Below, piece after piece: positions 370 to 61,800 of a stretch of 64,000 nucleotides of DNA (the first letter of the stretch is position 1; each line of letters opens with the position of its first letter). Below the pieces are notes generated by a model, which did not search any database, was not told the origin of the DNA, and saw only the letters and a list, made by a program, of their open reading frames with translations. The position numbers and the translations under genes were made by a program. The stretch is from Neoechinorhynchus agilis. Lineage: Eukaryota; Animalia; Acanthocephala. Location of the stretch: contig CM121341.1 of the NCBI GenBank assembly GCA_051530055.1, positions 4,070,784 through 4,134,783 of the forward strand, in the 5' to 3' direction.

Positions 370-1251
370 ATGGATGTTGAGTTTCAAGCAGTCGTTTCCG
401 AGGTACGAAGCCATCTATCGCGATATTCCGGCCTTTTAGGCGAATTGGAAATTAGTGATAATCCGGATTTCGACTCTTTTTGGAAATCAATCACTTTTTT
501 GTATAGCGAGAAGCATCCCTTCCGTTTCGTGATGAAATCGGTAAACGTTAGACAATTTTGTAATTGGATAGTTTTAATTGACCAAAATATTTGCTGGATT
601 TTAAAGTCGGAAAAACATAAGAAATTCTCTAGTCGATCTTTAACGGAATAGTCCCTTTCAGTTTGAAAAAGTGATCACATTTCAATACTAGAAGCTGAAC
701 AGTTCATTGACAACGAAATTAAACAGCTCGAATTATTTTTAAGTTCTCAGCAACGCCGAATAATTCAATTAGAAAACGAAATTAAATCGCTTCGCTCGGC
801 ATTCGTACGGTTACAAGCGACGAAAATGCGCTTAATGGCATACCACGAGAACCGGAAAAAGCTTTTATTGACCGATTTGGACTGTGGAACTGATGTAACT
901 CGGATCAATATGTTTTCAACTGAGCAATCATTGGAGAAGAAATGGCAATTTTCGAGTGCGTTGGACAATTTGATTGACCAAGGCACTGAGATAGTCCGAA
1001 ATTTAAAACCAACTTAACGTGTCTTTTACAAGGGAAAAGATCGAAGACTCGTTAAATTTGGATTACAACAGCAACGATTCGGGATTAGTCGTTCAATATC
1101 CCGTCTTTCGCTCTCTGAATGGACACTAACACGTTCAAAAGATTTAATAGAAGAGATCGGACACCGTGCTCGCTCTGACTGGATTATTCTGTTTATTGGA
1201 TCTGCTTTAATCATCCTTCTTATTGTGATGATCTATCGATTCCTTCTCTAA
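370..1251 (+). CDS. GOSR2: Golgi Qb-SNARE membrin/GOSR2-like (~204 aa after removing two inserts)
   Basis: Segments 370-478, 686-1005 and 1066-1251 are all in one frame. Reads MDVEFQ...GELEISD / LEAEQFIDNEIKQLELFLSS...LDNLIDQGTEIVRNL / QQQRFGISRS...IGHRARSD followed by a C-terminal hydrophobic anchor (WIILFIGSALIILLIVMIYRFLL). This matches the Habc-SNARE-TM layout of membrin. Confidence 0.75.
479..687. other. Inverted-repeat-bounded insert in GOSR2 (207 nt; left boundary TT instead of TA)
   Basis: tggaaatcaatcacttttt (481-499) pairs with aaaaagtgatcacatttcaa (666-685). Contains in-frame stops at 649 and 664. Removal restores the frame. Confidence 0.55.
1004..1065. other. TA-bounded inverted-repeat insert in GOSR2 (60 nt)
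   Basis: TA-aaaccaacttaacg...cgttaaatttggat-TA. An in-frame TAA at 1015 lies upstream of the internal GT dinucleotides. Removal gives RNL-QQQRF. Confidence 0.75.
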
Positions 1252-4200
1252 TTGATTAAATTCACTTTTCTTACTTCCACACGGAGTAATAATGCATATG
1301 AACACAAAGATCAATTGAACTACGAATCGGTACTGCATGAAGAAGCTATAACCTCGGTGGAAATCAAGGAGGGAAAATGGTATCAAGCAGTAATTGGCCG
1401 CTGTGATCGCAGAAAACCACGTCAAAACGTCGTAAAATCTCTTGCGTGATGGTGATTTCAAAAACAATGGACGGAACGATCGTCTATCAAACACAATCCG
1501 TCTTATATCTTCAGAGTAAGAAAAGTTAACTAGTTTTTTAAAATATTACATCTTATGAGGTAAAATTTCTTCAAAAAGGGCCTAGAAGCCTCCTTCGTCT
1601 AAAAAAGATGAAAGGATCTTTTATACGGACATTAATAAGACAATCTCTAAATTTTAGCGTTATCTTTAGATCTCTATACCTTTTTGAACTTTTAAGAATA
1701 GAGATTAAAAATCCTAGGTGAAATTTCTTCAAAAAAGCCCTAGAAGCCTTCTTTGTTTAAAAAAGTTGAAAAGACAATCTCTAAATTTTAGCGTTATCCT
1801 TAGATCTCTATACTTATTTGAACTTTTAAGAATAGAGATCAAAAATCCTAGGTGAAATTTCTTCAAAAAAGCCCTAGAAGCCTTCTTTGTTTAAAAAAGT
1901 TGAAAAGGCAATCTCTAAATTTTAGCGTTATCTTTAGATCTCTATACTTTTTTGAACTTTTAAGAATAGAGATCAAAAATCCTAGGTGAAATTTCTTCAA
2001 AAAAGCCCTAGAAGCCTTCTTTGTTTAAAAAAGTTGAAAAGGCAATCTCTAAATTTTAGCGTTATCTTTAGATCTCTATACTTTTTTGAACTTTTAAGAA
2101 TAGAGATCAAAAATCCTAGGTAAAATTTCTTCAAAAAAGCCCTAGAAGCCTTCTTTGTTTAAAAAAGTTGAAAAGGCAATCTCTAAATTTTAGCGTTATC
2201 TTTAGATCTCTATACTTTTTTGAACTTTTAAGAATAGAGATCAAAAATCCTAGGTGAAATTTCTTCAAAAAAGCCCTAGAAGCCTTCTTTGTTTAAAAAA
2301 GTTGAAAAGGCAATCTCTAAATTTTAGCGTTATCTTTAGATCTCTATACTTTTTTGAACTTTTAAGAATAGAGATCAAAAATCCTAGGTGAAATTTCTTC
2401 AAAAAGCCCTAGAAGCCTTCTTGTTTAAAAAGTTGAAAAGACAATCTCTAAATTTTAGCGTTATCTTTAGATCTCTATACTTTTTTGAACTTTTAAGAAT
2501 AGAGATCAAAAATCCTAGGTAAAATTTCTTCAAAAAAGCCCTAGAAGCCTTCTTTGTTTAAAAAAGTTGAAAAGGCAATCTCTAAATTTTAGCGTTATCT
2601 TTAGATCTCTATACTTTTTTGAACTTTTAAGAATAGAGATCAAAAATCCTAGGTGAAATTTCTTCAAAAAAGCCCTAGAAGCCTTCTTTGTTTAAAAAAG
2701 TTGAAAAGGCAATCTCTAAATTTTAGCGTTATCTTTAGATCTCTATACTTTTTTGAACTTTTAAGAATAGAGATCAAAAATCCTAGGTAAAATTTCTTCA
2801 AAAAAGCCCTAGAAGCCTTCTTTGTTTAAAAAAGTTGAAAAGGCAATCTCTAAATTTTAGCGTTATCTTTAGATCTCTATACTTTTTTGAACTTTTAAGA
2901 ATAGAGATCAAAAATCCTAGGTGAAATTTCTTCAAAAAAGCCCTAGAAGCCTTCTTTGTTTAAAAAAGTTGAAAAGGCAATCTCTAAATTTTAGCGTTAT
3001 CTTTAGATCTCTATACTTTTTTGAACTTTTAAGAATAGAGATCAAAAATCCTAGGTAAAATTTCTTCAAAAAAGCCCTAGAAGCCTTCTTTGTTTAAAAA
3101 AGTTGAAAAGACAATCTAAATTTTAGCTTATCGAAGCCTTCTTTGTTTAAAAAAGTTGAAAAGGCATCTCTAAATTTTAGCGTTATCTTTAGATCTCTAT
3201 ACTTTTTTGAACTTTTAAGAATAGAGATCAAAAATCCTAGGTAAAATTTCTTCAAAAAAGCCCTAGAAGCCTTCTTTGTTTAAAAAAGTTGAAAAGGCAA
3301 TCTCTAAATTTTAGCGTTATCTTTAGATCTCTATACTTTTTTGAACTTTTAAGAATAGAGATCAAAAATCCTAGGTGAAATTTCTTCAAAAAAGCCTAGA
3401 AGCCTTCTTTGTTTAAAAAAGTTGAAAAGGCAATCTCTAAATTTTAGCGTTATCTTTAGATCTCTATACTTTTTTGAACTTTTAAGAATAGAGATCAAAA
3501 ATCCTAGGTGAAATTTCTTCAAAAAAGCCCTAGAAGCCTTCTTTGTTTAAAAAAGTTGAAAAGGGAAAAGACAATCTCTAAATTTTAGCGTTATCTTTAG
3601 ATCTCTATACTTTTTTGAACTTTTAAGAATAGAGATCAAAAATCCTAGGTGAAATTTCTTCAAAAAAGCCCTAGAAGCCTTCTTTGTTTAAAAAAGTTGA
3701 AAAGGCAATCTCTAAATTTTAGCGTTATCTTTAGATCTCTATACTTTTTTGAACTTTTAAGAATAGAGATCAAAAATCCTAGGTAAAATTTCTTCAAAAA
3801 AGCCTAGAAGCCTTCTTTGTTTAAAAAAGTGAAAAGCAATCTCTAATTTTAGCGTTATCTTAGATCTCTATACTTTTTGAACTTTAGAATAGATCAAAAT
3901 CCTAGGTAAATTTCTTCAAAAAAGCCTGAAGCTTCTTGAAAAGTTGAAAAGGCAATCTCTAAATTTTAGCGTTATCTTTAGATCTCTATACTTATTTGAA
4001 CTTTTAAGAATAGAGATCAAAAATCCTAGGTGAAATTTCTTCAAAAAAGCCTAGAAGCCTTCTTTGTTTAAAAAAGTTGAAAAGACAATCTCTAAATTTT
4101 AGCGTTATCTTTAGATCTCTATACTTATTTGAACTTTTAAGAATAGAGATCAAAAATCCTAGGTGAAATTTCTTCAAAAAAGCCCTAGAAGCCTTCTTTG

Positions 4201-7200
4201 TTTAAAAAAGTTGAAAAGGCAATCTCTAAATTTTAGCGTTATCTTTAGATCTCTGTACTTTTTTGAACTTTTAAGAATAGAGATCAAAAATCCTAGGTGA
4301 AATTTCTTCAAAAAAGCAAGCCTTCTTTGTTTTTCTTGACGAATTTCCCTTGAAGCGGCACAAAGACCAAAGTTCAATAAGGACGGATCCTGCTTTTCTA
4401 CAACCACGTCCGGCATAACTTCCAAGAGCTGCGGATATGAAGGCAAGATAATAGCCCGGGTAGAATCCGTGCCAAAAAGCACTTAAAATATGGGTCGCCA
4501 TTGTCCGACCTTGTCGCCCTTTGAGCCTATCGTAACATATTCGTCTTAGCCAAATAGTCGTTTGTATATTCCACGCATCCAAAATTTCTTTAAAACTCTT
4601 TCCAAACTCCACCCGAAGTGGATTAACATTGTTAATGACTGAATAAGTGTCAAACACTTGACCATGTTCGTCCATTTTGTAGACTACACCAAATCCTGAG
4701 GATAAATTGACCGCTTCCGATAATTTCCAGGCAAAATAATAACGTGAACGATAACCGAACATTGAAATTTGTATCACAACCATTTTCTTTGCCTATAAAG
4801 TCTTAGCGTCAAATGCAGAGTTTGCGATTTAAAATCGGTAAAAAATTAAATCGTTGTTAAAATCTGGTTAAAAAGTCTCCGAATTAATTATTTTCTATGT
4901 AAAGCCTCGGTGTTTAATGTTGAGTTTGCGATTTAAAATAGGTAAAAAATAAAACCACTGTTAAAATCTGGTTAAAAAGTCTCCAAATTAATTATTTTCC
5001 GCTCAAAGCCTCGGTGTTCAATGTTGAATTTGCGATTAAAAATCTCCAAATTAATTATTTTCCCCACAAAGTCTCGGTGTTTAACGTCGAGTTTGCGATT
5101 TAAAACCTTTCTAAAAAAATCTTCAAATTAATTATTTTCCGCACAAGGCCACGGTGTTTAATGTTGAGTTTGCGATTAAAAATCTCCAAATTAATTACTT
5201 TCCGCACAAATCCTCAGTGTTTAATGTTGAGTTTGCGATTTAAAAACTTTCTTAAAAAATCTCCAAATTAATTATTTTCCCCACAAATCCTCGGTGTTTA
5301 ACGTCGAGTTTGCGATTTAAAACCTTCCTAAAAAAATCTTCAAATTAATTACTTTCCGCACAAATCCTCAGTGTTTAATGTTGAGTTTGCGATTAAAATA
5401 AAATAAAACCTGTTAAAACTTTAAAAATCTCCAAATTAATTATTTTCCGCACAAAGCCTCGGTGTTTAATGTTGAGTTTGCGATTAAAAATCTCCAAATT
5501 AATTATTTTCCCCACAAAGTCTCGGTGTTTAACGTCGAGTTTGCGATTTAAAACCTTTCTAAAAAAATCTTCAAATTAATTATTTTCCGCACAAAGCCAC
5601 GGTGTTTAATGTTGAGTTTGCGATTAAAAATCTCCAAATTAATTACTTTCCGCACAAATCCTCAGTGTTTAATGTTGAGTTTGCGATTTAAAATCTTTCT
5701 TAAAAATCTCCAAATTAATTATTTTCCCCACAAATCCTCGGTGTTTAACGTCGAGTTTGCGATTTAAAACCTTCTAAAAAAATCTTCAAATTAATTATTT
5801 TCCGCACAAAGCCACGGTGTTTAATGTTGAGTTTGCGATTTAAAAACTTTCTAAAAAAATCTCCAAATTAATTATTTTCCGCACAAATCCTCAGTGTTTA
5901 ATGTCGAGTTTGCGATTTAAAATAGGTAAAAAATAAAACCACTGTTAAAATCTGGTTAAAAAGTCTCCAAATTAATTATTTTCCGCTCAAAGCCTCGGTG
6001 TTCAATGTTGAATTTGCGATTAAAAATCTCCAAATTAATTATTTTCCCCACAAATCCTCAGTGTTTAACGTCGAGTTTGCGATTTAAAATCTTTCTGAAA
6101 AAAATCTCCAAATTAATTATTTTCCGCACAAATCCTTCGGTGTTTAATGTTGAGTTTGCGATTTAAAATCTGGTTTAAAAATTTTCCGCACAAATCCATC
6201 GGTATTTAGCGTCAAGTTTGCGACTTAAAACCTTTCTAAAAAAAGTCCCAAATTTTCAAAAATTAATATCGTCCCAAATGGAATTAAAATTGATGATCGA
6301 TTAGATAAGCACAGAAATGGGTTGCATTTAAGCTCAAAATAAGTAAAGGAAGTTTCCGAATGACATTAGAAAGAGTTCTATCGTCCAGAAGGTTTTGTTC
6401 GATTGGAAATCGGCTGGTAATGATAAGGAAGGAGGCGACATAAACCACGCATTCGATAAGTTTAACGATTGTCACTTTAAAGTTATTATTTGCTTGGACA
6501 AGAGTGATAAAGTCGAGATAGTCTCGATAGAAGAAAAGAGGGCCGGATAATACACCATGGAAAGCGAATACGTATCCAAGAAGGCGTTTAAAGTTAGGTT
6601 TCTGGACTGCTTGTAGTTTTTGATCGGTTGTGAGTTTATCTTGTGGAGTTTGATTATCTTTGATGGCGAACGCGAGATGACTTAGCTTAGCAAGCGTCTA
6701 TTTTTCGTTAAGTCCTACGAGAAAAAAAATAGACGAGCCAAGATAATTTTTGAGTGGATATCATAATGGGACCGGAAATGCTGTAAACGTACCCGGATGA
6801 CAATTGCATTAGTCTAATATGGACATAGCTGAGATGGATCAATAAGGCAAATAAGACGAAAGATGGATGATTTGGGGCACTTCTTGTAACGAGTTCAAAG
6901 ATGAGTATTTGAATGAACAAATGAACAATGTGATCACCGAAACATAGATAAGTTAATCCAATTCCAATCAGAGCGGATATTAGGGCATTCAGGTCAGCGT
7001 TTTTGGGTTTTAACCATCGGAAATAAAATCGACTTAGAACAAGAGCCAAAAACTGACTTATAACGTAGGATTTTTGATCCCGGGACAACGAAAACTCCAT
7101 TTGTGGTTGGGGCAAAGGTGGAACTGAAGTGGAAACGACAATGAAATGTTCTTTCGTTCCGTAGTCTTGATTGAAATGACTAGCGTGAAAGTCAGGTTCA

Positions 7201-7205
7201 ATCAT
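1207..7205 (-). CDS. MBOAT-family lysophospholipid acyltransferase (MBOAT1/2, oysgedart-like), ~484 aa after removing three inserts
   Basis: Segments 7205-6744, 6682-6353, 4783-4399 and 1484-1207. Motifs GPIMISTQKL-SHLAFAIKD, GPLFFYRDY, RSRYYFAWKLSEAVN, AWNIQTTIWLR, SAFWHGFYPGYY (catalytic His) and RRSFRPLF...YDVLTW. Confidence 0.85.
1485..4400. other. TA-bounded inverted-repeat insert in MBOAT (2914 nt) containing a satellite
   Basis: TA-tcaaacacaatccgtcttat...ataaggacggatcctgcttttc-TA, with a TAGA direct repeat on the minus strand. Removal gives GRGC-RRSFRP. Confidence 0.7.
1560..4320. repeat. Tandem satellite, 134-bp unit, ~20 copies
   Basis: cctagg recurs at 1981, 2115, 2249 and onward. 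Copies are near-identical; a few around 3100 and 3840-3940 carry indels. Confidence 0.97.
4784..6355. other. Insert in MBOAT (1569 nt) bounded by a TTT direct repeat, with weak inverted repeats and an internal satellite
   Basis: cttagcgtcaaatgca (4802-4817) versus tgcatttaagctc (6323-6335). Removal gives NVIRK-MVVIQISMFGYRSRYYFAW. No GTA/GTG-AG consensus donor in the region. Confidence 0.5.
4810..6240. repeat. Tandem satellite of ~60-77-bp monomers with higher-order alternation
   Basis: Recurrent aaattaattattttccgcacaaagcctcggtgtttaatgttgagtttgcgatt, with alternating short and long variants. Confidence 0.95.
6683..6745. other. TA-bounded inverted-repeat insert in MBOAT (61 nt)
   Basis: TA-gcttagcaagcgtctattttt...aaaaatagacgagccaaga-TA. 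Removal fixes a frameshift and gives TQKL-SHLAFAIKD. Confidence 0.8.
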
Positions 7206-7312
7206 TTGTGGGATTGTCTCTTTTGAATAGACGTACTGAAGAGTTTTTTGAGAGAGACAGAAAGGTGGTTCTTAATTGAATTCCTATTATTGGACGATCA
7301 TGTCCATCTTTT

Positions 7313-8704
7313 TAACCGAAAAATTGAGATTTTTCGAAACAGGAAGTCTCGTTCTGGTCGTATAAAAAGGTTTTGTTCGCGGGGATTTTTCCTATTCCAG
7401 AGGTGGTTCCGAGACTTGTACCATCCCCGAAGGATTTTCCCTTGATGATTCTGATAAACCGCTGAAATTCGATTAATTCGACTTTGTTTTAAAATGAAGT
7501 TTCACATTTGATTGGATTGAGATTGTTTGAAACAGGAAGTCTCGTTCTGGTCGTATAAAAAGGTTTTGTTCGCGGGGATTTTTCCTATTCCAGAGGTGGT
7601 TCCGAGACTTGTACCATCCCCGAAGGATTTTCCCTTGATGATTCTGATAAACCGCTGAAATTCGATTAATTCGACTTTGTTTTAAAATGAAGTTTCACAT
7701 TTGATTGGATTGAGGTATTTCAAAATAGGAAGCCTAGTTCTGGTCCTATGAAAAGGTTTTGCTCGCGGGGATTTTTCCTATTCCAGAGGTGGTTCCGAGA
7801 CTTGTACCATCCCCGAAGGATTTTCCCTTGATGATTCTGATAAACCGCTGAAATTCGATTAATTCGACTTTGTTTTAAAATGAAGTTTCACATTTGATTG
7901 GATTGAGATTGTTTGAAACAGGAAGTCTCGTTCTGGTCGTATAAAAAGGTTTTGTTCGCGGGGATTTTTCCTATTCCAGAGGTGGTTCCAAGACTTGTAC
8001 CATCCCCCGAAGGATTTTCCCTTGATGATTCTGATAAACCGCTGAAATTCGATTAATTCGACTTTGTTTTAAAATGAAGTTTCACATTTGATTGGATTGA
8101 GATTGTTTGAAACAGGAAGCCTAGTTCTGGTCGTATGAAAAAGTTTTGTTCAGGGGGATTTTTCCTATTCCAGAGGTGGTTCCGAAACTTGTACCATCCC
8201 CGAAGGATTTTCCCTTGATAATTCTTATAAACCGCTGAAATTCGATTAATTCGACTTTGTTTTAAAATGAAGTTTCACATTTGATTGGATTGAGATTGTT
8301 TGAAACAGGAAGTCTCGTTCTGGTCGTATAAAAAGGTTTTGTTCGCGGGGATTTTTCCTATTCCAGAGGTGGTTCCGAGACTTGTACCATCCCCCGAAGG
8401 ATTTTCCCTTGATGATTCTGATAAACCGCTGAAATTCGATTAATTCGACTTTGTTTTAAAATGAAGTTTCACATTTGATTGGATTGAGATTGTTTGAAAG
8501 AGGAAGTCTCGTTCTGGTCGCGTAAAAAGGTTTTGTTCGCGGGGATTTTTCCTATTCCAGAGGTGGTTCCTAGACTTGTACCATCCCCGAAGGATTTTCC
8601 GTTGATGATTCTGATAAACCGCTGAGCAGAATCTCACTGTTACAAAAGGCTGAGCAAAATCAAAACTTACTATTTTTTCGTTAATTTATTGTTTTTTTTG
8701 GTTA
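7313..8704. other. Candidate intergenic TA-bounded insert (1390 nt) enclosing a satellite
   Basis: TA-accgaaaaa...ttttttggt-TA (8/9 inverted match) brackets the whole 193-bp array between the divergent MBOAT and HIRA genes. Confidence 0.45.
7325..8625. repeat. Tandem satellite, ~193-bp unit, ~6.7 copies
   Basis: aggaag motif at about 7340, 7533, 7726 and 7919 with high identity between units. Confidence 0.96.
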
Positions 8705-8776
8705 TAATTACGATCAATGTTCATGTACGGACTTTATATTGTTTCCTTCGCTTGTTTTCAGATAACTGTAATATTA

Positions 8777-11164
8777 ATGGAGATTATAAAGGATCTTTGG
8801 ATAAACCACGGTGGTCTATCGTTGTATTCGTTGGACATTGATGGGACGGATAGCTACGTGGCGACTGCTGGCCTTCTTGACGATAACGGATGTGTAACCG
8901 TATGGAACTTCCCTGGCATGAGAGGTGATCGGTCAAACACAAAACCTATGTTTCGCGGATGTTGCCACCTTGGCTGTGTGAACGCTGTCCGTTGGCAGCC
9001 GCCGTCCGGTTTTTGCTTTGCGACCGGAGGAGCTGACGGTCTTGTCAATATATGGACGCATTTAGGAACCGAAGCACAATGGGAACGATCGACTGTTTTG
9101 AAAGGTCATTCGGGTGACGTTCTCGGCGTTGAATGGTTTCCAGCGATCGATGAGTCTCGATCTGAGATCCTTGCGACATGTTCGGTTGACTGTCGGGTTT
9201 TTGTGTGGAATGTCGAACGACAGGAATTGATTGTGAAGTTAATTGGGCACACGGGTATAGTTAAAGGAGTTTCTTGGGATCCAGTTGGCCGCTATCTTGT
9301 TAGTCAATCCGATGATCGGTCGATGATTTTGTGGCGTACTCTTGATTGGTCAATAGAAGGTACGTTCAAAAAGAGCTTTGAATCCAATCCAACCGATAGT
9401 CATTTTCTTATCACTAATCGAGGTATTCCAATGGGGATCTAAAAACGGAAACAAAAACGAATACCATCGATCGAATAGACTGTGTTTTTCAACCAATGGA
9501 GACTCGATCGTTGCTGTGAACTGCATCAATAATCGCACTCCAGTCTGTCAAGTTTATCCTCGATCATGTTTTGGTTCAGAGAATGTGAACACTGAGATCA
9601 GCTTAGTAGGTCATTCTGATATTACTCAAGTTGTCCGGTTTTCACCACGAACATACAATCATGGACGAACTTTATTTGCTATTGCGGGCAGGGACTGTTC
9701 TTTATCCATTTGGATGTCAGACTTAAGTAAGCCGTTATTTGTAGCAACCAATCTGTTCCTTTCGGCAATTGTTGATATTTCGTGGACCACAGACGGGCAG
9801 TCCTTAATGGCTTGTTCTCTCGATGGAACGTCTTGTCGTATTGTGTTGGATGCAAAAGCGCTTTTTGAACAGGTTGATCCTTTGACTGATGTAGAGGTAG
9901 CCATATCCAAAGGATTTGGAGCAAGACATAATCTTAATAAGGCAGCGAGAGCGATCGGTAAATCGGGTCTCATAGATCCGAAACCAAAGCATCATAAACC
10001 CATGAAAGCCATTAATAACTCGAATTTGACAGATAAAGCTAAAAGGTTAGTTACGGATGCTGGTTCAATTGCAACGAATTCCGGTGTATTAAGAAAGGTC
10101 GTTCAAGTTGAATGCGGACAGAGTACATTAGTTTGATTTTCTTGAGGTGTATTGAGTAATTGTTTTTTGCAAGGGAAGATCCCCGAGGGAAATCCGTCGA
10201 TTGTTCTCCTTTTTTTATTCTCTATTTCACATGCCTAAGGTGTTTTTTCTTCAAAAAATGTGTCAATCACAATGAGAACTTCTAAGATATCGATCATCAT
10301 TGAGTCAAACTACGGTACCAGTTAGTAAAAAGGTCAAAAGAAGAGCCTCTTGACCTTGTTTTCATTTCAAAGGAGAGTGGAATCGAATGCAAGGTGACTA
10401 AGACTAGATACGGATTCGTCGTCTCATATGGAGATATATGGACTAGACTGATTCCATGCGTTACTCAATCGCCTATTGCGCTATGTTCAAACCGTCAATT
10501 GACCCACGTCCTTACATCGTCCGGGATTCTGTACTCTTTTGAATCGTGTTCAAATGGAAAGCAAGCGACAGTCCCATTCTTGGCGTCGAGTGGTTCACTT
10601 TGTTCGAAAAAACCAATACACATTCAATCGGTCGATCGAGTAGTGTTTGTAAGTACCGATCAAGAATGTTGGATCTACACCATAAATAAAGACCAATCAT
10701 TGGATCGAATCGCCAGTGGACCACTTACACTACCTTTAACTACTGGATTTCCACCACAATTCACAATGGAAAATGGTGTTGTTTGTTTGCAAACTAATGG
10801 CGTGAAATTTAGATTGTGCCAACGAACAATGACTTGGCGGTTGGTCCATGTGGACGCAGAATCAAGTGTATGTGATAGGTATTTCAGTCTGTTAAGATTG
10901 AATGAAGATGATACGACCAGTAATCTAACAGATGAACTGGAATCCGTGAGAACGATGGCTGCCGCCGATAGCACGTTTCCAATAGAATGCCTCAAATCCA
11001 CATGTATTGAGTGTTTCAGAAAATGTAAAGCTGTTCTGAACATCATCGATGAACCGACTTTCGATGAAGAATACCAAGACGTTACGAGTATTCGTGAAGC
11101 AGTGGAAAAGTATCGGACGTTACTTGATCAGAGTTGTATAGGACAGAATAGAAAGCGAAAATGA
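8777..11164 (+). CDS. HIRA: Histone chaperone HIRA (~712 aa after removing two inserts)
   Basis: MEIIKDLWINHGGLSLYSLDI start, WD40 repeats (CHLGCVNAVRW, GHSGDVLGVEW, GHTGIVKGVSWDPVGRYLVSQSDDRS..WRTLDW) and a C-terminal Hira-like region. Segments 8777-9409, 9477-10130 and 10313-11164. Confidence 0.85.
9409..9477. other. TA-bounded inverted-repeat insert in HIRA (67 nt)
   Basis: TA-tcactaatcgaggtattc...gaataccatcgatcgaa-TA. Removal fixes a frameshift and gives SHFL-RLCFSTNG. The apparent GT(9423)-AG(9478) pair is out of phase. Confidence 0.75.
10129..10312. other. TA-bounded inverted-repeat insert in HIRA (182 nt)
   Basis: Perfect TAGTTTGA...TCAAACTA termini. Removal joins the 9378-frame ORF to the 10394-frame ORF (QSTL-RYQLVKRSKEEPLDL). 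Confidence 0.65.
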
Positions 11165-11568: not shown

Positions 11569-12434
11569 ACTTTGTGTTACGCTTACTGAAATGTGGAATT
11601 ACTGTCATGAACCCTTTTATATGTAAAAACGGAAATTTTTTTGAGGATTATTCAAACCTTTTAAGCGGCACCCATCCAGATCCTAAAGGCTTATCAGTTA
11701 CTTTCTCGCTTTTGGTCGTACGTTTTCGGCACTCACTGATGCCTCGAGAGGAGATATCTGAGGATCCGGATAGGTATTTTAATTCAAACAAGCGTTTTGC
11801 TGACCAAATCAAAAATTTGCCAAACTTAGCCGTCTAAATTGTTTGAATAATCCCAAAAACGAAATGTACTATTTTTTCTGCTGAACTTGACAGTAATTTA
11901 TTTGTACATCAAAAAAGTAAGTAACGTAAAAATATACTTGTTCATTAGTACTTTTTTGGAAGTAGACATCTTACGAAAAGGTGGAGGTATCGGGCAACTG
12001 AAAGTTCTTAGTCTTTTCACGATCGGCGAAAATGATATAACTAGTTTATGAGAATTGAAGTCACTACTTTAAACGGATATTAGAAATCAACGAAAGCAAT
12101 AGAAATTCAGGATATCATTTTGAAAAAAAACCCTTTAAAATCACTGAATCAAATCACGATTAAATTCTAATCTTTAAGTATGGATTGCTAAAATGCAAAA
12201 ACACATCGCCTTCTAAGACCATAATTACCAACGCAAACCCAGTTTTACGCGTTTCCTCCATAACGATGCCTTGTGAGTTCATGTGACTAATACAGACCCT
12301 TAGAGCTCTACACTGAGTTTAGTCACCATTCAAAACTCCCTCGTTCAAAGAATATTAGAGAAAATGTGAGTAAGAGAACACTTTGCGTTCGTATACACCT
12401 TAGAGCTCTTTGAAAACCACTTGGCGTAAGTATC

Positions 12435-13540
12435 TATAATTTGGGGAAAATAAAAGTGGGAAATCGTACAAAATGCTTTATAGGTTTTGGAAATAACACA
12501 TAAAAGACGTGCTTTTTGGTTCCGATAAAATTATTTGCATAAAAAAATTTAAATTCTATTTCGCAGTTTTCTTTATAATTTGGGGAAAATAAAGGTGGGA
12601 AATCGTACAAAATGCTTTATAGATTTTGGAAATAACACATAAAAGACGTGCTTTTTGGTTTCGATAAAATTATTTGCATAAAAAGATTTAAATTCTATTT
12701 CGCAGTTGGTCTTTATAATTTGGGGAAAATAAAAGTGGGAAATCGTACAAAATGCTTTATAGATTTTGGAAATAACACATAAAAGACGTGCTATTTGGTT
12801 TCGATAAAATTATTTGCATAAAAAGATTTAAATTCTATTTCGTAGTTTATCTTTATAATTTTGGGAAAATAAAGGTGGGAAATCGTACAAAATGCTTTAT
12901 AGATTTTGGAAATAACACATAAAAGACGTGCTTTTTGGTTTCGATAAAATTATTTGCATAAAAAGATTTAAATTCTATTTCGCAGTTGGTCTTTATAATT
13001 TTGGGAAAATAAAGGTGAGAAATCGTACAAAATGCTTTATAGATTTTGGAAATAACACATAAAAGACGTGCTTTTTGGTTCCGATAAAATTATTTGCATA
13101 AAAAAATTTAAATTCTATTTCGCAGTTGGTCTTTATAATTTTGGGAAAATAAAGGTGGGAAATCGTACAAAATGCTTTAAAGATTTTGGAAATAACACAT
13201 AAAAGACGTGCTTTTTGGTTCCGATAAAATTATTTGCATAAAAAAATTTAAATTCTATTTCGCAGTTGGTCTTTATAATTTGGGGAAAATAAAGGTGAGA
13301 AATCGTACAAAATGCTTTATAGATTTTGGAAATAACACATAAAAGACGTGCTTTTTGGTTCCGATAAAATTATTTGCATAAAAAGATTTAAATTCTATTT
13401 CGCAGTTGGTCTTTATAATTTTAGGAAAATAAAGGTGAGAAATCGTACAAAATGCTTTATAGATTTTGGAAATAACACATAAAAGACGTGCTTTTTCGTC
13501 GATGTACCAAGAAATTTAAATTCTTTAATTTATATTTCGC
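12435..13540. repeat. Tandem satellite, ~140-bp unit, ~7.7 copies
   Basis: aaatcgtacaaaatgc recurs at 12461, 12600, 12740 and onward. Confidence 0.96.
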
Positions 13541-14004: not shown

Positions 14005-15198
14005 ATGGCATTAAAATCACCGATAAGAGTTGCTGTGACCGGTGCGGCTGGTCAGATCGGATATTCGCTGGTCTATATGATCGGAAGCGGATATGTCTTT
14101 GGCGAAGATCAGGTAAAACGGAATGTTTATATCTGAAATTTCACATTATGAACATAGCCAATTATTCTGCATTTGATCGAGTTGAAAGTAGCGATGGAAG
14201 CATTAAAGGGTGTAGTTATGGAGCTTCAGGACGCTGTATTACCCCTTCTTCATGGTGAGAAAAAGAAAAATTAAACTTATTTTTTTTATAATTAACCCAT
14301 TTAAACCACAGACATTATTGCTACTGATTCGCTTGATGTTGGATTTAAGGACGTTGACGCCGTTTTCTTGGTTGGATCAATGCCTCGTAAAGCTGGAATG
14401 GAACGAAAAGATCTGTTGAGTGCTAACGTGAAGATCTTTAAAACTCAAGGCGAAGCTCTTGAAAAATATGCTAAAAAGACAGTAAAAGTTCTCGTGGTAG
14501 GAAATCCAGCGAACACAAACGCTTTAATTTGTTCAAAATTCGCTCCTTCAATTCCTGTTCAAAATATTACTGCTATGACTCGTTTGGACCAGAATCGATG
14601 TCTCGGTCTTTTGGCGGAGAAATTGAAGCTCAATGTGAACGATGTTAGAAACGCGATTGTTTGGGGCAACCACTCCGTCACAATGTTCCCCGATACATTC
14701 CACGGTCATGTCCGACAAGACGGAAAATGGGTGCCTATTAATAATGCAGTCAATGATATCGATTGGATCAAAGGTGATTTTGTTACAGTGAGTATTTGGT
14801 CTCTTGGTTTTATTTAAATATCTTTCAAAGACCATTCAAAAAAGAGGAGCAGCTATAATTGCAGCTAGAAAACTGTCTTCGGCGTTATCAGCAGCTAAGG
14901 CGGCTTCTGATCACATGAGAGATTGGTGGAGAGGAACTGAGGTAAGAGGTTTGTCTATTGATTTCTTAATTTTTGTGCTAAGGAAGGGAAATGGGTGTCA
15001 ATGGCGGTTCCAACCGATGGATCATATGGCATTAAGGAAGGATTAGTATTTAGTTTGCCATGTACTGTTGACAAACATGGGAATTACAAGATTGTTCAGG
15101 GACTTGATTTAAATAGTTATGCAATGAAAATGCTTGCAAATACTACTAAGGAGCTAGAGGAGGAAAAAGCTGTCGCCTTGGAAGCTTGCGAAGAGTAA
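14005..15198 (+). CDS. MDH1: Cytosolic malate dehydrogenase with four canonical introns
   Basis: [69 protein letters not shown] introns at 14113-14157, 14255-14311, 14788-14830 and 14942-14982. Confidence 0.97.
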
Positions 15199-21955: not shown

Positions 21956-21973
21956 ATTTGTGTTTAAAAAATT

Positions 21974-28126: not shown

Positions 28127-28130
28127 ATGA

Positions 28131-38980: not shown

Positions 38981-38982
38981 AT

Positions 38983-49300: not shown

Positions 49301-50709
49301 ATGCTTTTGGTGCGTGATCTTTAACTACTTCTAGCAAATCTGATCGGTGAACTGTGTTCAATACGTTTTCAGAAGAAATTGTTTGTAACGTTTTCACAGC
49401 CATGCTTTCAATGATATCATTTCATAGATGCATTTAGTATAAACGGAATCGTCTGGAATATTTACGGATCTCATCGCCCTGTGTTGCAGTCGTTTTTCGT
49501 CATTTGCTGGTTCAATTCGTCTACCATATTCTCTATGTGAAATTCACCGAGAAATCCTCGAAGGTTGGATCCATGTCGGAACCACATTTCAGTTCACGAA
49601 TTAAGGTTGTAATAAGATTGTATAGAAGTTTCGTTACTGCCTTCTTCGATCTCTATTTAACAAAATTGTTGTTCAGGTGCTAATAAAAGCGATTGACGTA
49701 TAGAACGAGAAATCTGATTTCTGATAAGGAGTCCTTCACTTCCCTAAAAAGCTTCTTCTAAATCCAGCGTCTTTCGAAAACCACCATTTAATATATCAAA
49801 GTAGAACGGCATAAGGCTATCAATATTACCCATTTTCGGGATAGTTTGGAAACTGATTATTTTTATTTTGACGCTTCTAATTTGAGTTGCTACGTATAAA
49901 ACGAACAGAATTTGTCGAAAGTTAGACGCATCATTGACAATATCGAAATTTACCGATAGTGATCATTTACAAATAAAGCTTTTCTATCCATTTCAACGAC
50001 AAATAGTGGTTAATTGCTTTGATTATTCTATAATAGGAGTCCAATTTTTAGGTCGAATAGTTGCGATAGATGAACAATGTTCCCAAGCGCTGCCTTTGAG
50101 AGACGTGGATAACAGTTCGCTTTGTTCCGAGCTCGAAAAACAGCCATAGATTACATATAAAACTTTCAATAGTCCTTATTTACTGGCTTTTGTAAAATGC
50201 CCTAATTCAATGAATCCGAAATAAACAAATCAAGTTCGTAAAATCAAGTAATGAAATACTGTTGCGGGCAAACGCATTCAAATCTTACGAATCGACAAGT
50301 TTTCCGAACTGGGAAAAGTGTATGATAGTGCTTTAGAAGCTTGAGTTATCTTTTGTGAGGAAGTGAACTATCTAATTAGACTTGAAGGAGTTACGGCTCT
50401 TTGTTCTTTTGAACGTGATTTGGATAACCTAAAAGATAAGAAAGGTATCACTGGTAATGAAGGTCGGAGTTACGCTTGTGTTGAAATATTCACGTTCCTA
50501 TAGCAGAAGACTTTCCTCCCAAAGGTTTCATTCCAAACTGCCTTACAAACTCGTATTTTTTCTGCCAAAACCAAAAACTAAATAAAGTTGTACTGGATTT
50601 GATTTAAAACACAAATGTTTTAGTTCCACAAGCAATTTTCAAACGCACTTGATTGTAAACAAGCGTTAAACATTGTTGACAAGAGCGTTCTCCATATTTA
50701 GAGAAGTCG

Positions 50710-51186
50710 ATGAGAAAGGTAACCAGTTTGCTCCGATTTAATTCGGGATACATTCAAGGGAGTTGCATTACTTTTGGTATATTGCCATCTACAGTCACCA
50801 TGAACGTAATCTATCATTTTCTACTCGTATGGACATTCTTTGTCTTTGCCAATCGCTGTATGAGCTTCGACTCAAAAATATTTGGATGGATAAATATCGA
50901 TGAAAGCTCTGAACAATTCCCTGAGTGGTTCGTTGGCAAACATTTGGTCAAAACAGAAAAACAGCTTGAAGATGGGTCAAAAGAAGAGATGCAAGTTTCC
51001 ATCAAACCGAAAAATGACACCGTCGCCGTTACAGAAACGAATACTACCGAAATTATCGAAGGATCTCGCAAAAGAAATCTAACGAAGAACATGGATATCT
51101 CGACTGAAGGAACAACTACCGTTAAAGGTAAGAAAAAGAAAATTAACAGGGATAAAAATATGGATTTCGCCAAACAGCAAGATTAG
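50710..51186 (+). CDS. Uncharacterised secreted-type protein, copy 3
   Basis: Protein identical to copy 2. Block 49965-51312 duplicates about 36130-37480. Confidence 0.5.
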   Translation: MRKVTSLLRFNSGYIQGSCITFGILPSTVTMNVIYHFLLVWTFFVFANRCMSFDSKIFGWINIDESSEQFPEWFVGKHLVKTEKQLEDGSKEEMQVSIKPKNDTVAVTETNTTEIIEGSRKRNLTKNMDISTEGTTTVKGKKKKINRDKNMDFAKQQD

Positions 51187-51714
51187 TGTCGAGCAACAGC
51201 ATAGATTTATTCGTTCATCGTAGTTAGCATAGAGTTATATAATCTTTTATTTGTTGACAAGGGGTTAAAGGTAAATTATTGATAGAGTTCATTTAGGCAA
51301 AATGTTAAGAATCCAAATGAACGATCGTCATTTTTCAGTTAATTTCCTTATTTAAAAATGAGAAACATGAACATTTCGCATTTACATCAAATAAAAGACC
51401 AAGAATAGAAAAAGAGGATTTGCATTGAAAGCAGCGAGTATTCAAAAAAAATTAAAGTAAAATAACTAAAGATTATCGATTGATCCCTCCTTTTTGTGGA
51501 AATAAATGTAGAAAACATGTCTTGAAATCCAATTTGTAAAGTTGAACCAAATGATATTTAAAAATTCGAACACTAATCAATTTTAAAAACGAAGAAAACT
51601 GTTGGGATTTTCTGGAGCAATAAAAATCAAATGAACAGCTTTCGGGATATTCGATACTTTCTGATCCATGAACTTAAAAAAGAATTTCTTTGAGAATTAC
51701 ATTCGGGGGAATCT

Positions 51715-51857
51715 AATTTTGGTCTTCGATGAGCTGTCACCACCCCGAGAATTAAACATTAATTATTGAATAGAGGGAATTCAGGTTCCGAAATATTTAA
51801 TTCAATAATTAATGTTTAATTCTCGGGGTGGTGACAGCTCACCGAAGACCAAAATTA
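51715..51857. mobile_element. TA-flanked MITE-like foldback element
   Basis: TA-attttggtcttc.atgagctgtcaccaccccgagaattaaacattaattattgaat pairs with its near-perfect reverse complement, which ends gaagaccaaaat-TA. Confidence 0.8.
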
Positions 51858-51928: not shown

Positions 51929-52067
51929 GAGAGATAAATGAAATTAAGATTTTATTGGATATTTCGATCCACTATTTCGGATCTTCTTCAGCGATTGTTT
52001 GCAAGTAAGAAGATGTGAGATAGTGGATCGAAATATCCAATAAAAATCTTAATTTCATTTATCTCTC
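51929..52067. repeat. Inverted repeat with ~47-bp arms
   Basis: 51929-51975 is the reverse complement of 52020-52067 with one indel. Flanked by a cagattgtaaattg direct repeat. Confidence 0.85.
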
Positions 52068-58122: not shown

Positions 58123-58876
58123 CCTATTTACCAACACAAAAAACCTTATCGTTGATTTTAAATTTTTTGAACATTTTAACTTATTTCATCATTATGCTCT
58201 ATTGCCAATATTGAAGGTAGCCAAAATATCTATAAATCGCAATAATCTGTCTAATAGAACAGAAATCGAAAAAGCTTTTGCCGTGTTATAAATTTAGGTT
58301 TGTTCATTGGGTGTTGTTCGTACTTTATGGGTTTTTCCACTTTTCCGACTGTCCAGACGAATCGCTAATATTGGGACGTTTAAAAAAAGAGCTAATTTTA
58401 ATATCACATCCCGCTTTTTAATCGAGCAACCGTTTTTACGAATCTTTTATCTAAAATTATTCCAGAATGATGACCACAACCTTTCGAATTCCATCGACCT
58501 ATTTACCAACACAAAAACCTTAATTTATCGTTGATTTTGAATTTTTTTGAACATTTTAACTTATTTCATCATTATGCTCTATTGCCAATATTGAAGGTAG
58601 CCAAAACATCTATAAATCGCAATAATCTGTCTAATAGAACAGAAATCGGAGATGCTTTTGCAGTGTTATAAATTTAGGTTTGTTCATTGGGTGTTGTTCG
58701 TACTTTATGGGTTTTTCCACTTTTCCGACTGTCCGGACGAATCGCTAATATTGGGACGTTTAAAAAAAGAGCTAATTTTAATATCACATCCCGCTTTTTA
58801 ATCGAGCAACCGTTTTTACGAATCTTTTATCTAAAATTATTCCAGAATGATGACCACAACCTTTCGAATTCCATCG
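58123..58876. repeat. Tandem duplication (~375-380 bp x2) of the EPRS promoter and first codons
   Basis: 58123-58497 is nearly identical to 58498-58876. Both copies contain ATGATGACCACAACCTTTCGAATTCCATCG. Confidence 0.9.
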
Positions 58877-61800
58877 GCGATTATACTTGTTAACCCGGTT
58901 CTCGATGATCGAGTTTCCACCTGTCTAAAACAACTAAATCTCTCAACAACAATCGAATTGTGTACGGATGAAACTATTATGAATTGTCAAGCAAGACTCG
59001 TCTACAGCTCCGACGAGCCTCCAACTGTATTAAAAAGCCCAAGTGCAATCTGCCGATTACTATGTTCTACGTGCAATAGTTCGTTGTATAGATCCTTCGA
59101 AGATTGCCAATCAGTGGACAGTTGGCTGGCACTTTGCGAATGGACTTGCGCCGAAGATAGAGCTCGGCGTCTTCGTGCATTTATAAAACTACTGAAAGGA
59201 ATAATCGAAGAAAACGAGTACGTTTGTGGATCAAATCCCACTCTAGCTGACATATTCGTTCATTCAATGTTGTCCAAACAACCAACTGAATTATTGAGCG
59301 ACAAAGTGACACAATACATGGACGATTTGAATGGTATGTTCAAAGAAAAGAAGACTCCTAATCCTTCGATTTCAATAAAACCGGACCATGGTCGGTTCTT
59401 AGAGTTACCTAATGCTGAGATGGGTAAAGTGGTAGTCCGTTTCCCACCTGAAGCAAGTGGATATCTTCACGTAGGTCACGTAAAAGCAGCGCTTTTGAAT
59501 CAATTCTACAAAGAGAAATACGACGGTCGGTTGATTTTGCGGTTTGATGACACTAACCCAGAAAAAGAAACAAGTGAATTCGAAAACGCTATTCTCGATG
59601 ATTGTAAAAATCTTCTTCAACTTCGTGTAAGTCAATGGATCTAAAACGGCGCTGGGCTTTAATATAAGATCCATTGATGTAGACCAATCCACTCGAACGT
59701 CGGATCATTTCGAGCGATTGATATCAGCATGTACCAATCTGATAACCGCCGGAAAAGCCTACTGCGATGACACTGAATCTGGAGAGATGAAACGTCAACG
59801 AGAGCAGAAAACAAAATCACGGTGCAGGGACACGAGTGTAGAAACGAATCTCGCTATTTGGTCACGAATGCAGCAAGGCAAAGCTCCGACTTATTGTGTC
59901 CGGGCTAAAATCGACTATGAATCGCCGAATGGATGTATGCGAGATCCAACTATTTTTAGATGTAAAAACGAACCTCATGTTATATGGAAAGAAAGATTTA
60001 AAGTGTATCCTACGTACGATTTTGCATGTCCTCTTGTAGATAGTTGGGAAGGAGTGACTCATGCTTTAAGGACAACCGAATATCACGACCGAGATGAGCA
60101 ATACGATTGGGTTTTAGAATCTCTTAAGCAACGTAAAGTTCATATATGTGAGTTTAGTCGCCTGAATCTACAATCTACGGTACTTTCAAAGCGAAAGCTC
60201 GCATGGTTTGTGAGTTCAAACAAAGTCACAGGTTGGAATGATCCACGAATGCCTACTTTACGTGGAGTGTTTCGCCGTGGAATGACTCTGGATGGCCTGC
60301 GAGCTTTTATAGAAAGTCAAGGGTCTTCTAAATCAAACGTAAATATGGAATGGGACAAGGTATGGGCGATGAATACACGAGTGATTGATCCTCACGCTAA
60401 AAGGTACACTGCACTTCTCGCAAGACACGTAGTCAAAGCTTGTGTTCGAAATGTTAGCTCGGTCGCGAAACGAACAGTTCAACTCCATCCCAAGGACGCG
60501 AGCGTTGGTACAAAGCAGATTTACACTGGACCAAATATCCTTCTAGACGGGGACGACGTGATGGAGCTGAGTTGTGGAGATCGTGTGACCTTGATCGGAT
60601 GGGGGAATATGCGAGTGAACTCTATTGTGAGACACGATGACCGAGTTGATTGTCTTATTCTGGATGCTGAGTTAGAGAATACGGATTTTAAGAAAACTAA
60701 AAAAATCAACTGGCTCTGTATGGCTTCTATGCTGCGATCAACTGCAATCCCCGTTGTTTGTGTTTATTTTGATCATCTAATATCAAAACCGAAACTAGCA
60801 CCCGATGATGATTTTAAAGAGTATGCTAAACATAAAACAAGGTTTGAGTTTTCAATGACCGGAGAACTTGCGATGAAGAATATCGAGAAAGGAGAAATCA
60901 TACAGTTGCAAAGGCGAGGATATTTCATCTGTGAACAACCGTACATGCAAGCGACGGCTGCAAGTGGACTCAAATCTCCTTGTGTACTTTACAATATCCC
61001 GGACGGCACCACAAAGGAGTCTCCCACAAGTCTAATGACCGTGAGAAAGAAGTTCTCTCGTCAGTCAAGTCATAATCCACTCTCGTCGACGTGTATTCAT
61101 ATGGCACTTAAAGAAGACGATAGTGTTCTGGGTTTATTGCGTGAAGACCCAAAACAGGCTAAAAAGAGTGTGTTCCATATTGATGATCTTGATAGATTGA
61201 TCAAGGAACAAGGGGATGCTGTGAGACGATTGAAATCAGAGAAGAAATCAAAGGAAGAGATTGATGTGGAAGTAAAGAAACTTTTGGACTTAAAAGCCCA
61301 ATATAAAGAAGCTTTTAAAAAGGATTGGCAACCCGCTCAAAATTCTAAGAAAAAGTCCGGAGAAAAGTCGGCGGTGACCAGGCAATCAGTAACAAGCTCG
61401 TGTCAATCCGCGGATGATCTTGACAAGTCTATAAAGGAGCAGGGTGATCTAGTGAGACACCTGAAATCAGAAAAGAAATCAAAGGAGGAGGTCGATGTGG
61501 AGGTAAGAAAACTTTTGGAATTAAAAGCTCAATACAAAGGGGTTTGCGGCAAAGACTGGCAACCTTCTCAAAGTCCGAAAAAAATAAAATCAGATGATAA
61601 GGCGGCTTCAGCAAAAAGCGACGTGCAATTAACTGATGATCTTGATAAATCCATTAAGGAACAAGGCGATACTGTTAGAAAACTGAAATCGGAGAAGAAA
61701 CCCAAGATTGAGATCGATCCGCAAGTTAAAAAATTGCTCGAGCTGAAAGCAAATTACAAAGAAATGACTGGAAAAGATTGGCAACCGTCGCATAATATCC

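Follow-up and report, generated by a model that had tools for sequence, protein, structure and literature searches.

We have analysed a 64-kb stretch of DNA (here called the window) from the acanthocephalan Neoechinorhynchus agilis, part of the 19.4-Mb chromosome CM121341.1 in assembly GCA_051530055.1, and observed that the coding sequences of GOSR2, an MBOAT7-like acyltransferase gene (below, MBOAT), HIRA and EPRS are interrupted by seven inserts that are bordered by TA and have ends capable of pairing with each other. For all seven, the observation holds up and has strong statistical support. With moderate confidence we read these inserts as foldback insertions of a TA-targeting kind, similar to miniature inverted-repeat transposable elements (MITEs), that would serve as non-canonical introns and be spliced from RNA at their TA borders, as in Fritillaria. 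An earlier note on this DNA had described eight such inserts, and had proposed that they are precisely excised, either from somatic DNA or from RNA.

Borders and ends of the inserts

The inserts were located from the DNA and its three reading frames, and all of their borders were then tabulated together (Table 1; inserts are numbered within each gene). We observed an exact TA direct repeat at six of the seven, GOSR2#1 being bounded by TT and TA. As TA makes up 6.3% of the dinucleotides in the window, and with five boundary registers allowed for each insert, the chance probability of six TA/TA borders among seven is ~4e-10. The duplication is not consistently extended to 3 base pairs (bp), and at the six TA/TA inserts it is followed by AAAC, TCTT, GAAA, TCAC, GTTT and AGTC. 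Also, duplexes predicted between the first and last 28 nucleotides (nt) of the seven inserts have energies of -14.3 to -20.1 kcal/mol, compared with -7.4 +/- 3.4 kcal/mol for randomly chosen segments of the window of equal length (empirical P of 0.0015-0.035 per insert, n = 7; Fisher's combined p 5e-9). The earlier note had allowed that TA borders with inverted repeats might prove no commoner at frame breaks than chance would have it; by both measures, the seven inserts lie well outside chance.

The four short inserts (GOSR2#2, MBOAT#1, HIRA#1 and EPRS) are predicted to be end-closing hairpins, with z-scores between -2.35 and -4.19. The strongest is MBOAT#1, with the stem CGTCTATTTTT / AAAAATAGACG (-18.9 kcal/mol, z -4.19), followed by EPRS, which has an 11-bp perfect stem (-17.5 kcal/mol, z -3.73), HIRA#1 (-15.4 kcal/mol, z -3.54) and GOSR2#2 (-13.5 kcal/mol, z -2.35; duplex P 0.017). 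The terminal inverted repeat of GOSR2#1, at 480-499 / 666-685 (duplex -14.3 kcal/mol, P 0.035), closes the ends in both the minimum-free-energy and the centroid folds, that of HIRA#2, TAGTTTGA...TCAAACTA (duplex -16.4 kcal/mol, P 0.0175), likewise folds so as to close the ends, and MBOAT#3 has a terminal duplex of -20.0 kcal/mol (P 0.002). Whole-insert folds of the 182-nt and 207-nt inserts are no stabler than those of shuffled sequences (z -0.62 and +0.39, respectively); it is their terminal helices alone that stand out. The distance from TA to stem varies from 0 to 10 nt across the inserts. With 8-nt exon flanks added, the predicted duplex often ran on into the exons, so that both junctions lay in one internal loop, for example at MBOAT#3 and HIRA#2. 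The terminal helices are on average 2.9 kcal/mol stabler on the sense strand, and G-U pairs number 13 there compared with 6 on the antisense strand (p 0.085); this bias is suggestive of structure at the RNA level, but it is not significant.

Within the window, we found no sequence similarity among the inserts and no second copy of any of them, so that, in agreement with the earlier note, they do not form one MITE family. Their borders and ends are those of an inserted DNA transposon of the Tc1/mariner or MITE type. The 3-bp TTA duplication of PIF/Harbinger elements, which would fit only 2 of the 7, was rejected on the basis of sequence, as was a Helitron insertion (between A and T, with TC...CTRR ends). 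A scan of the whole window for TA...TA segments with terminal duplexes returned 101 clusters, some of them inside continuous open reading frames (ORFs); being non-specific, it was not used to estimate element density. Among the repeat copies present in the window, no presence/absence polymorphism of hairpin inserts was seen. The seven inserts lie in 4 of ~9 host genes within the 64 kb.

Restoration of coding sequence by removal of the inserts

The stitched GOSR2 product, of 204 amino acids (aa), aligns end to end with P0362 (209 aa), which is the sole detectable close homologue. GOSR2#1 contains in-frame stops, and its removal gives PDFDS/LLEAEQF (the slash marks the junction), without a gap against PDFDR/LMEAESF of P0362; a GT-AG option at 501-671 (171 nt) would leave 12 extra residues relative to that homologue. 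GOSR2#2 contains an in-frame TAA at 1015-1017. Its removal restores IVRNLQQQRF, which includes the zero-layer Q of the SNARE domain, again with no gap against P0362, and the GT-AG option at 994-1071 would delete 6 aa inside the SNARE heptads. Reassignment of the TAA codon was considered and rejected, since the 60-nt deletion accounts both for the stop and for 20 extra residues.

For the MBOAT protein, the closest solved relative is human MBOAT7 and the closest named relatives, at 34-38% identity, come from bdelloid and monogonont rotifers and from Pomphorhynchus laevis. Junction models were scored on a profile of 50 homologues. The model with TA excisions of 61 nt and 2914 nt scored 407.6 bits and was ungapped at both junctions. 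At MBOAT#1, this is 41 bits above a GT-AG alternative (88 nt; 366.3 bits) and 6 bits above a GC-AG alternative (58 nt, with one additional residue; 401.5 bits), and removal yields MISTQKLS/HLAF, ungapped against MISTQKLS/ALAF of P. laevis. MBOAT#3 is filled by ~20 copies of a 134-bp satellite (1637-4332). Three GT-AG alternatives there scored 391-397 bits, which the TA model exceeds by 10-16 bits, and the TA junction is ungapped against the intronless P. laevis orthologue.

That orthologue (WNNJ02002384.1, 3001-4467) is a single, uninterrupted exon of 1467 nt, and the MBOAT inserts are therefore lineage-specific gains. The homologue from Seison nebaliae (JALJEE010002849.1, 1501-3451) has 11 GT-AG introns. 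By this comparison, the intron content of MBOAT has turned over wholly within Seison and the acanthocephalans (11 introns versus none versus one GT-AG intron and two TA-hairpin inserts). All 11 Seison introns are 42-54 nt long and start with GTT (GTTAAA, GTTATT, GTTTGT etc.) instead of the usual GTA or GTG, an observation from one gene.

The one GT-AG intron of N. agilis MBOAT, intron 2, corresponds to the eighth, 1569-nt insert of the earlier note, and here our results depart from that account. It is full of a 63/77/140-bp satellite, and we found no direct repeat, TA or TT, at its borders and no terminal complementarity (-7.4 kcal/mol, P 0.46); nor could the exact borders claimed for it be reconstructed. 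Removal of 1569 nt scores 5 bits higher than removal of the 1572-nt GT-AG intron and is ungapped against P. laevis. The best reading of the segment is that of a normal GT-AG intron, 1572 nt long, although its exact borders leave room for 1569 nt. The count of eight frame-breaking inserts thus comes down to seven clean insertions into otherwise intact coding sequence (52, 60, 61, 67, 182, 207 and 2914 nt), and it is for these seven that the reported terminal inverted repeats and direct repeats (six exact TA/TA, one TT/TA) hold.

HIRA#1 contains an in-frame TAA, and its removal restores the WD40 motif SHFL/RLCFSTNG, ungapped against the family motif hvlRLsWsPdG. Of 55 in-frame GT/GC-AG options that were enumerated, the best scored 276.2 bits, compared with 296.7 bits for the TA model and 260.6 bits for the public gene model. 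HIRA#2 sits in an unconserved linker, where in-frame GT-AG options exist at 10123-10304 (182 nt) and at 10123-10325 (203 nt), the second as the earlier note had cautioned.

The EPRS insert is a genuine hairpin flanked by TA, or GTA, yet one with no need for non-canonical excision. A GT at 59631 and an AG at 59682, a pair also foreseen in the earlier note, bound an in-frame segment of 52 nt, the same length as the TA excision, and the two products differ in one residue (D to N). The public protein KAL7674564.1 is the exact GT-AG product. Profile scores were 206.1 bits for TA, 203.7 for this GT-AG pair, 201.7 for a 55-nt GT..TA segment and 197.7 for a 58-nt GT-AG pair, and the profile cannot separate the first two. 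The public model uses a weak GTCAAT donor, and 4 nt upstream of it is a perfect GTAAGT, which with the same TAG acceptor would produce a 56-nt intron and a shifted frame. A spliceosome acting at EPRS would have to shun this best-looking donor or take a non-AG acceptor.

It had been claimed that deletion of every insert together with one repeat copy yields an ungapped peptide. Against profiles or orthologues, this is so for GOSR2#1, GOSR2#2, MBOAT#1, MBOAT#3 and HIRA#1, which are thus clean lineage-specific insertions with TA duplication; the claim is weaker for HIRA#2, because of the unconserved linker, and for EPRS, where the hairpin and the GTA repeat are present but a GT-AG solution is equally good and special excision is not required.

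These canonical options could mean that the ordinary spliceosome uses cryptic GT/GC-AG pairs throughout, by introner-like exaptation or by Tc1-style removal as in C. elegans, and that the mRNAs differ from our models by small in-frame indels. In-frame options can be found at every insert, including the 55 at HIRA#1, and in-frame GT-AG pairs are available at HIRA#2, GOSR2#1 and MBOAT intron 2 as well as at EPRS. At four inserts, however, even the best option harms conserved sequence, through the 6-aa SNARE heptad deletion at GOSR2#2, the loss of 20 bits in a WD40 blade at HIRA#1, and the losses in an MBOAT helix at MBOAT#1 (6 bits with GC-AG, 41 with GT-AG) and at MBOAT#3 (10-16 bits). Also, the sites are weak (GTATTC, GCTCGT, GTCCGA), and the codons that would be skipped remain intact. 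We consider general use of cryptic sites unlikely. Since at least four inserts (GOSR2#2, MBOAT#1, MBOAT#3 and HIRA#1) have, among the GT/GC-AG solutions built or enumerated, none that spares conserved protein sequence, some precise non-canonical removal is the most economical explanation.

Two further candidates were rejected. U12-type introns require a 5' (A/G)TATCCTT and a branch site TCCTTAAC, and no insert starts with ATATCC or GTATCC in any register. Translational bypassing, as in T4 gene 60 or the byps of Magnusiomyces, would find matching in-frame take-off and landing codons at EPRS only (GTA/GTA); at HIRA#1 the TA straddles codons, and 182-2914 nt is far beyond any known bypass.

Tolerance of the inserts

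The host genes contain no other stop or frameshift over ~9 kb of coding sequence, which argues against decay and for tolerated insertions. The genome (46.2 Mb) was sequenced from pooled whole worms and single females, and assembled as a hybrid MaSuRCA draft with Hi-C from which haplotigs were purged (PMC12690905). Because the seven inserts reached the consensus of pooled whole worms, they are likely to be high-frequency, non-deleterious alleles, and, taken with the lack of other lesions, this suggests that they are tolerated, that is, removed, in essential genes.

It might be argued that the inserts are merely disruptive, being polymorphic or haplotype-specific transposons, decaying copies or assembly artefacts, with functional alleles elsewhere. 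Palindromic elements are common in the intergenic DNA of the window too, and the assembly is a hybrid draft purged of haplotigs (PMC12690905). We regard this as very unlikely: point stops and frameshifts are absent from the four genes, seven independent insertions are all found in the pooled-sample consensus, TA duplications and unique sequences are unlike assembler artefacts, and a protein search returned no second HIRA-like protein from the N. agilis genome. The earlier view that essential genes such as these are improbable pseudogenes is thus borne out for GOSR2, MBOAT, HIRA and EPRS.

A possible route of removal

The course of events that we favour would be as follows. A small foldback, MITE-like DNA element lands at a TA within a continuous coding exon of N. 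agilis and duplicates the TA. It could persist in an essential gene through removal from the pre-mRNA, in which the insert and one copy of the TA are lost. In the RNA, the terminal inverted repeat would fold as a hairpin and bring the two TA junctions together, and this hairpin would stand in for the missing GT and AG signals; the machinery that it serves would most probably be a spliceosome that is less strict in its choice of sites. Here we infer removal itself, its acting on RNA, its precision at the TA and the spliceosome as its agent. Ordinary splicing exists nearby. MDH1 has, as reported earlier, four short GT-AG introns (14113-14157, 14255-14311, 14788-14830 and 14941-14981, of 45, 57, 43 and 41 nt), which lack hairpins (folding z +0.25 to -1.7) and served as our control for normal splicing; because such hairpin-free introns of 41-57 nt occur here, the hairpin inserts would represent a second class and not a shifted consensus.

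RNA-level removal might instead be carried out by a structure-specific endonuclease that cuts precisely at the TA and an RtcB-type RNA ligase that joins the exons, similar to tRNA splicing, XBP1/HAC1-type splicing or the proposal for nonconventional introns of euglenids. The borders have only TA and a closing helix in common, the duplex often extends into the exons and places both junctions in one internal loop, and G-U pairs occur on the sense strand, all of which speak for such an enzyme. Yet we discerned neither bulge-helix-bulge geometry nor an IRE1-type loop consensus, the TA-to-stem distance is variable, the exon-exon pairing could be due to chance, and in Fritillaria, the only animal precedent, it is the U2 spliceosome that acts (PMC13326754). 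An endonuclease-ligase pathway seems to us an improbable agent.

At the DNA level, the inserts might be germline sequences that a domesticated transposase cuts precisely at TA out of somatic DNA, after the manner of the internal eliminated sequences (IESs) of ciliates, in which case the assembly would represent germline or embryonic DNA. TA borders, short unique sequences in coding exons and terminal inverted repeats fit the anatomy of Paramecium IESs, and the DNA came from whole worms, whose females bear many eggs (PMC12690905). Against this, inserts confined to the germline copies of GOSR2, HIRA and MBOAT would still need removal at the RNA level, and the Paramecium consensus TAYAGYNR is not seen at their ends. 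In animals, the germ cells themselves express housekeeping genes and depend on them, unlike the silent micronucleus of ciliates. To our knowledge, DNA elimination in animals removes large blocks, a size that does not fit intragenic pieces of 50-200 nt. Also, the inserts stand in an assembly consensus derived from pooled, mostly somatic tissue. We judge this route, which the earlier note had placed beside the RNA route, to be highly improbable. Since germ cells need these genes, the whole-worm assembly carries the inserts and Fritillaria offers a precedent, removal from RNA is to be favoured.

A more general proposition is that excision is sequence-independent, guided by structure and genome-wide, such that any helix-closed segment that aligns two TAs is cut out exactly, whether through a non-spliceosomal RNA pathway or through IES-like elimination of DNA. 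We find this doubtful.

Several points weigh against splicing of the inserts at TA borders by a relaxed spliceosome. No transcript-derived N. agilis protein was returned in searches with the stitched EPRS, MBOAT and HIRA products. The inserts share no terminal dinucleotide or motif beyond TA, which a conventional, U1- and U2AF-dependent spliceosome could not recognise, and the canonical introns of N. agilis look ordinary. GT/GC-AG alternatives that keep the frame exist for all seven inserts, with one at EPRS that is equally good. The absence of other element copies in the window, together with the unrelated termini, is odd for MITEs mobilised by a transposase, and generality rests on a single 64-kb window. 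Overall, the case for a non-canonical system is compelling for four or five inserts, and a system of precise excision is plausible, as inferred from sequence. The non-canonical removal put forward in the earlier note therefore survives for at least four inserts, in a set that is more heterogeneous than was thought, containing one ordinary intron and one hairpin with a usable GT-AG pair, and with a machinery that we can only propose.

Public annotation and other features of the window

The public annotation of N. agilis was made with BRAKER2, which admits canonical splice sites only, and poly-A RNA-seq from 74 worms is available (PRJNA1223661; PMC12690905). The annotation contains no gene for GOSR2 or for MBOAT (window 1-8776). 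The public HIRA model, P0241 (962 aa), is a fusion of HIRA to MDH1 that skips conserved WD40 sequence: 34 conserved WD40 residues are dropped at HIRA#1, and more sequence is lost at HIRA#2. Where the frame is otherwise open, P0241 also leaves out an in-frame 57 nt (~19 residues, VHVDAESSVCDRYFSLLR and one flanking L). Gaps of this kind at GOSR2, MBOAT and HIRA are what a GT-AG-only predictor yields at non-canonical interruptions, and are no evidence on the real mRNAs. Ten stitched models had no exact match in protein collections, because the public models are GT-AG predictions.

Table 1. Inserts, genes and repeats in the window, with junction sequences (30-mers of the TA model unless marked)
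Feature	Position	Strand	Description	Junction
GOSR2#1	479-685	+	207 nt; boundary TT/TA	CGGATTTCGACTCTTTACTAGAAGCTGAAC
GOSR2#2	1006-1065	+	60 nt; TA 1004-1005 / 1064-1065	ATAGTCCGAAATTTACAACAGCAACGATTC
MBOAT#1	6683-6743	-	61 nt; TA 6745-6744 / 6684-6683	TCCACTCAAAAATTAAGTCATCTCGCGTTC; halves TCCACTCAAAAATTA and AGTCATCTCGCGTTC
MBOAT#3	1485-4398	-	2914 nt; TA 4400-4399 / 1486-1485, extended to TAGA (4400-4397 / 1486-1483)	CCGGACGTGGTTGTAGACGATCGTTCCGTC
HIRA#1	9411-9477	+	67 nt; TA 9409-9410 / 9476-9477	ATAGTCATTTTCTTAGACTGTGTTTTTCAA; halves ATAGTCATTTTCTTA and GACTGTGTTTTTCAA
HIRA#2	10131-10312	+	182 nt; TA 10129-10130 / 10311-10312	GGACAGAGTACATTACGGTACCAGTTAGTA; canonical rival TTGAATGCGGACAGATAAAAAGGTCAAAAG
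EPRS insert	59630-59681	+	52 nt; TA inside GTA repeat 59627-59629 / 59679-59681	CTTCAACTTCGTGTAGACCAATCCACTCGA; canonical rival TTCAACTTCGTGTAAACCAATCCACTCGAA
MBOAT intron 2	4793-6364	-	GT(6364)...AG(4793), 1572 nt, GTCATT...TTTATAG, in frame	
GOSR2 (membrin, Qb-SNARE)	370-1251	+	two inserts; absent from public annotation	
MBOAT7-like lysophospholipid acyltransferase	7205-1207	-	Pfam MBOAT; absent from public annotation	
HIRA	8777-11164	+	public model P0241	
MDH1	14005-15198	+	four GT-AG introns	
EPRS (glutamyl-prolyl-tRNA synthetase, 5 WHEP domains)	58847-63839	+	one continuous reading frame apart from insert	
Tandem array	1637-4332		period 134 bp; in MBOAT#3	
Tandem array	4818-6254		period 63/77/140 bp; in MBOAT intron 2	
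Tandem array	7323-8625		period 193 (387) bp; between MBOAT and HIRA	
Tandem array	12435-13496		period 140 bp	
Tandem array	58123-58876		period 380 bp; overlaps EPRS start codon	

Further host genes in the window encode a leucine-rich-repeat protein, an SmG-like ORF and two single-exon kinases; Rfam and tRNA scans of the window were both empty. GOSR2 and MBOAT, on opposite strands, are convergent, with 45 nt common to their 3' coding ends (1207-1251), which shows a compact genome.

Large, near-perfect palindromic (foldback) elements occur between genes at 11639-11859, 17166-17373, 21974-22453, 51714-51857 and 51929-52067 (with 51950-52045 nested in the last). Those at 17166 and 51714 have common TAATTTTGG termini and TA flanks, and may belong to one MITE family; in the element at 21974, arms of 192 nt are 99% complementary. 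A stretch at ~20-52 kb is rich in retroelements. Three copies, >99% identical, of one segment lie at 20992-21980, 36131-37687 and 49967-51312, each with a 158-aa ORF that has no Pfam match and that the public record annotates as a gene in at least 2 of the 3 copies (21167 and 50710). This ORF lies in the retroelement-rich stretch, in which reverse-transcriptase fragments occur at 38650-38979 and 42385-42828.

Implications

Provided that removal does occur at the TA, Acanthocephala would be the second, independent animal lineage, and the first among protostomes, with transposon-derived non-canonical introns, and their borders would have no fixed dinucleotides beyond the TA duplication and a closing hairpin. 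Such introns would bear on the birth of introns from DNA transposons and on the replacement of splice-site recognition by RNA structure. They would be a truly new kind only if excision proved to be non-spliceosomal or to occur in DNA, either of which would be unprecedented in animals. There are practical consequences also. Acanthocephalans have been reported to lack ~45% of metazoan core genes (428/954; PMC12256650), and this figure may be partly inflated by unrecognised interruptions. Likewise, drug-target and expression analyses built on GT-AG-only gene models would inherit errors of the type described here for GOSR2, MBOAT and HIRA.

Comparison with known systems

In the literature open to our search, no paper dealt with acanthocephalan introns or splicing, or with TA-hairpin inserts in that group, and a term search of acanthocephalan and rotiferan genome papers found no mention of introns or splicing in this sense. 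We compared the inserts with systems from other organisms.

Like Tc1/mariner-mobilised (Stowaway-like) MITEs, they are small, could form hairpins, end in inverted repeats and are flanked by a duplicated TA. They differ in that, within the window, they form no multi-copy family with shared termini, in that some are just 50-65 nt long, and in that no second copies were seen in the 64 kb and no transposase partner was identified.

In Paramecium, excision of IESs takes place in the DNA of a somatic nucleus set apart from a silent germline nucleus; the ends of these sequences follow the consensus TAYAGYNR, and a Tc1/mariner origin is presumed for them. Like the N. agilis inserts, they are short, single-copy, non-coding segments within coding exons, with TA at both ends, of which one is retained, and with terminal inverted repeats. 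However, neither a separate nucleus nor that consensus applies to N. agilis.

Introners, known from Micromonas, Aureococcus, dinoflagellates and Amoebophrya, are DNA transposons that give rise to introns when they insert into exons; they have inverted repeats and target-site duplications, and examples from Amoebophrya have non-canonical borders (PMC7789003, PMC11282704). In contrast to the inserts, which show no family resemblance and a good GT-AG pair only at EPRS, they form multi-copy families with shared sequence, and mostly carry or co-opt GT and AG.

The nonconventional introns of euglenids have variable non-GT-AG borders, direct repeats at the junctions, a structure that joins the ends and a suspected MITE origin, and they coexist with conventional introns (PMC11282704, PMC12501133). 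Non-GT-AG borders and an end-joining secondary structure are also features of the N. agilis inserts. The hosts of the euglenid introns are protists, however, TA is not their defining repeat, and their CAG/CTG pairing at +4-6 / -8-6 was not found at the N. agilis borders.

The non-canonical introns of Fritillaria borealis, a larvacean tunicate, sit at species-specific positions, bear inverted repeats and target-site duplications, and are taken out by the U2 spliceosome (Henriet et al. 2019, as summarised in PMC11282704; Soo et al. 2026, PMC13326754). As with the introns of Fritillariidae, the inserts occur in an animal, sit at lineage-specific positions in coding exons, carry inverted repeats at their ends, have both borders marked out by a target-site duplication, and exist alongside GT-AG introns, whether these are in the minority or the majority; this is illustrated by MBOAT, intronless in P. 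laevis and with 11 GT-AG introns in Seison, and by the four GT-AG introns of N. agilis MDH1. In both, the reading frame is restored once the element and one duplicate are taken out, as seen here by sequence comparison. The host is indeed an animal, as the earlier note had assumed, but its statement that no system of TA and hairpin was known in animals overstates the distance from Fritillaria (PMC11282704, PMC13326754). There are differences also. Fritillaria introns favour AG/AC and AG/AT termini and a YAY triplet (TAC or TAT) at both borders, whereas the inserts share TA only; we found no YAY triplets at their borders, and only MBOAT#3 can be read as AG/AT. Unlike in Fritillaria, the first intronic bases vary (AA, TC, GA, TC, GT and AG), a strong hairpin closes the ends of every insert, and the host is a protostome parasite. 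Spliceosome dependence has been demonstrated in Fritillaria and is a proposal for N. agilis. The DNA was judged not to be of larvacean origin, since its nearest relatives are acanthocephalans and rotifers and N. agilis is named in the record itself. In summary, although the inserts lack the distinctive border features of both systems, our analysis suggests that they resemble the nonconventional introns of euglenids and work most like the non-canonical introns of Fritillaria.

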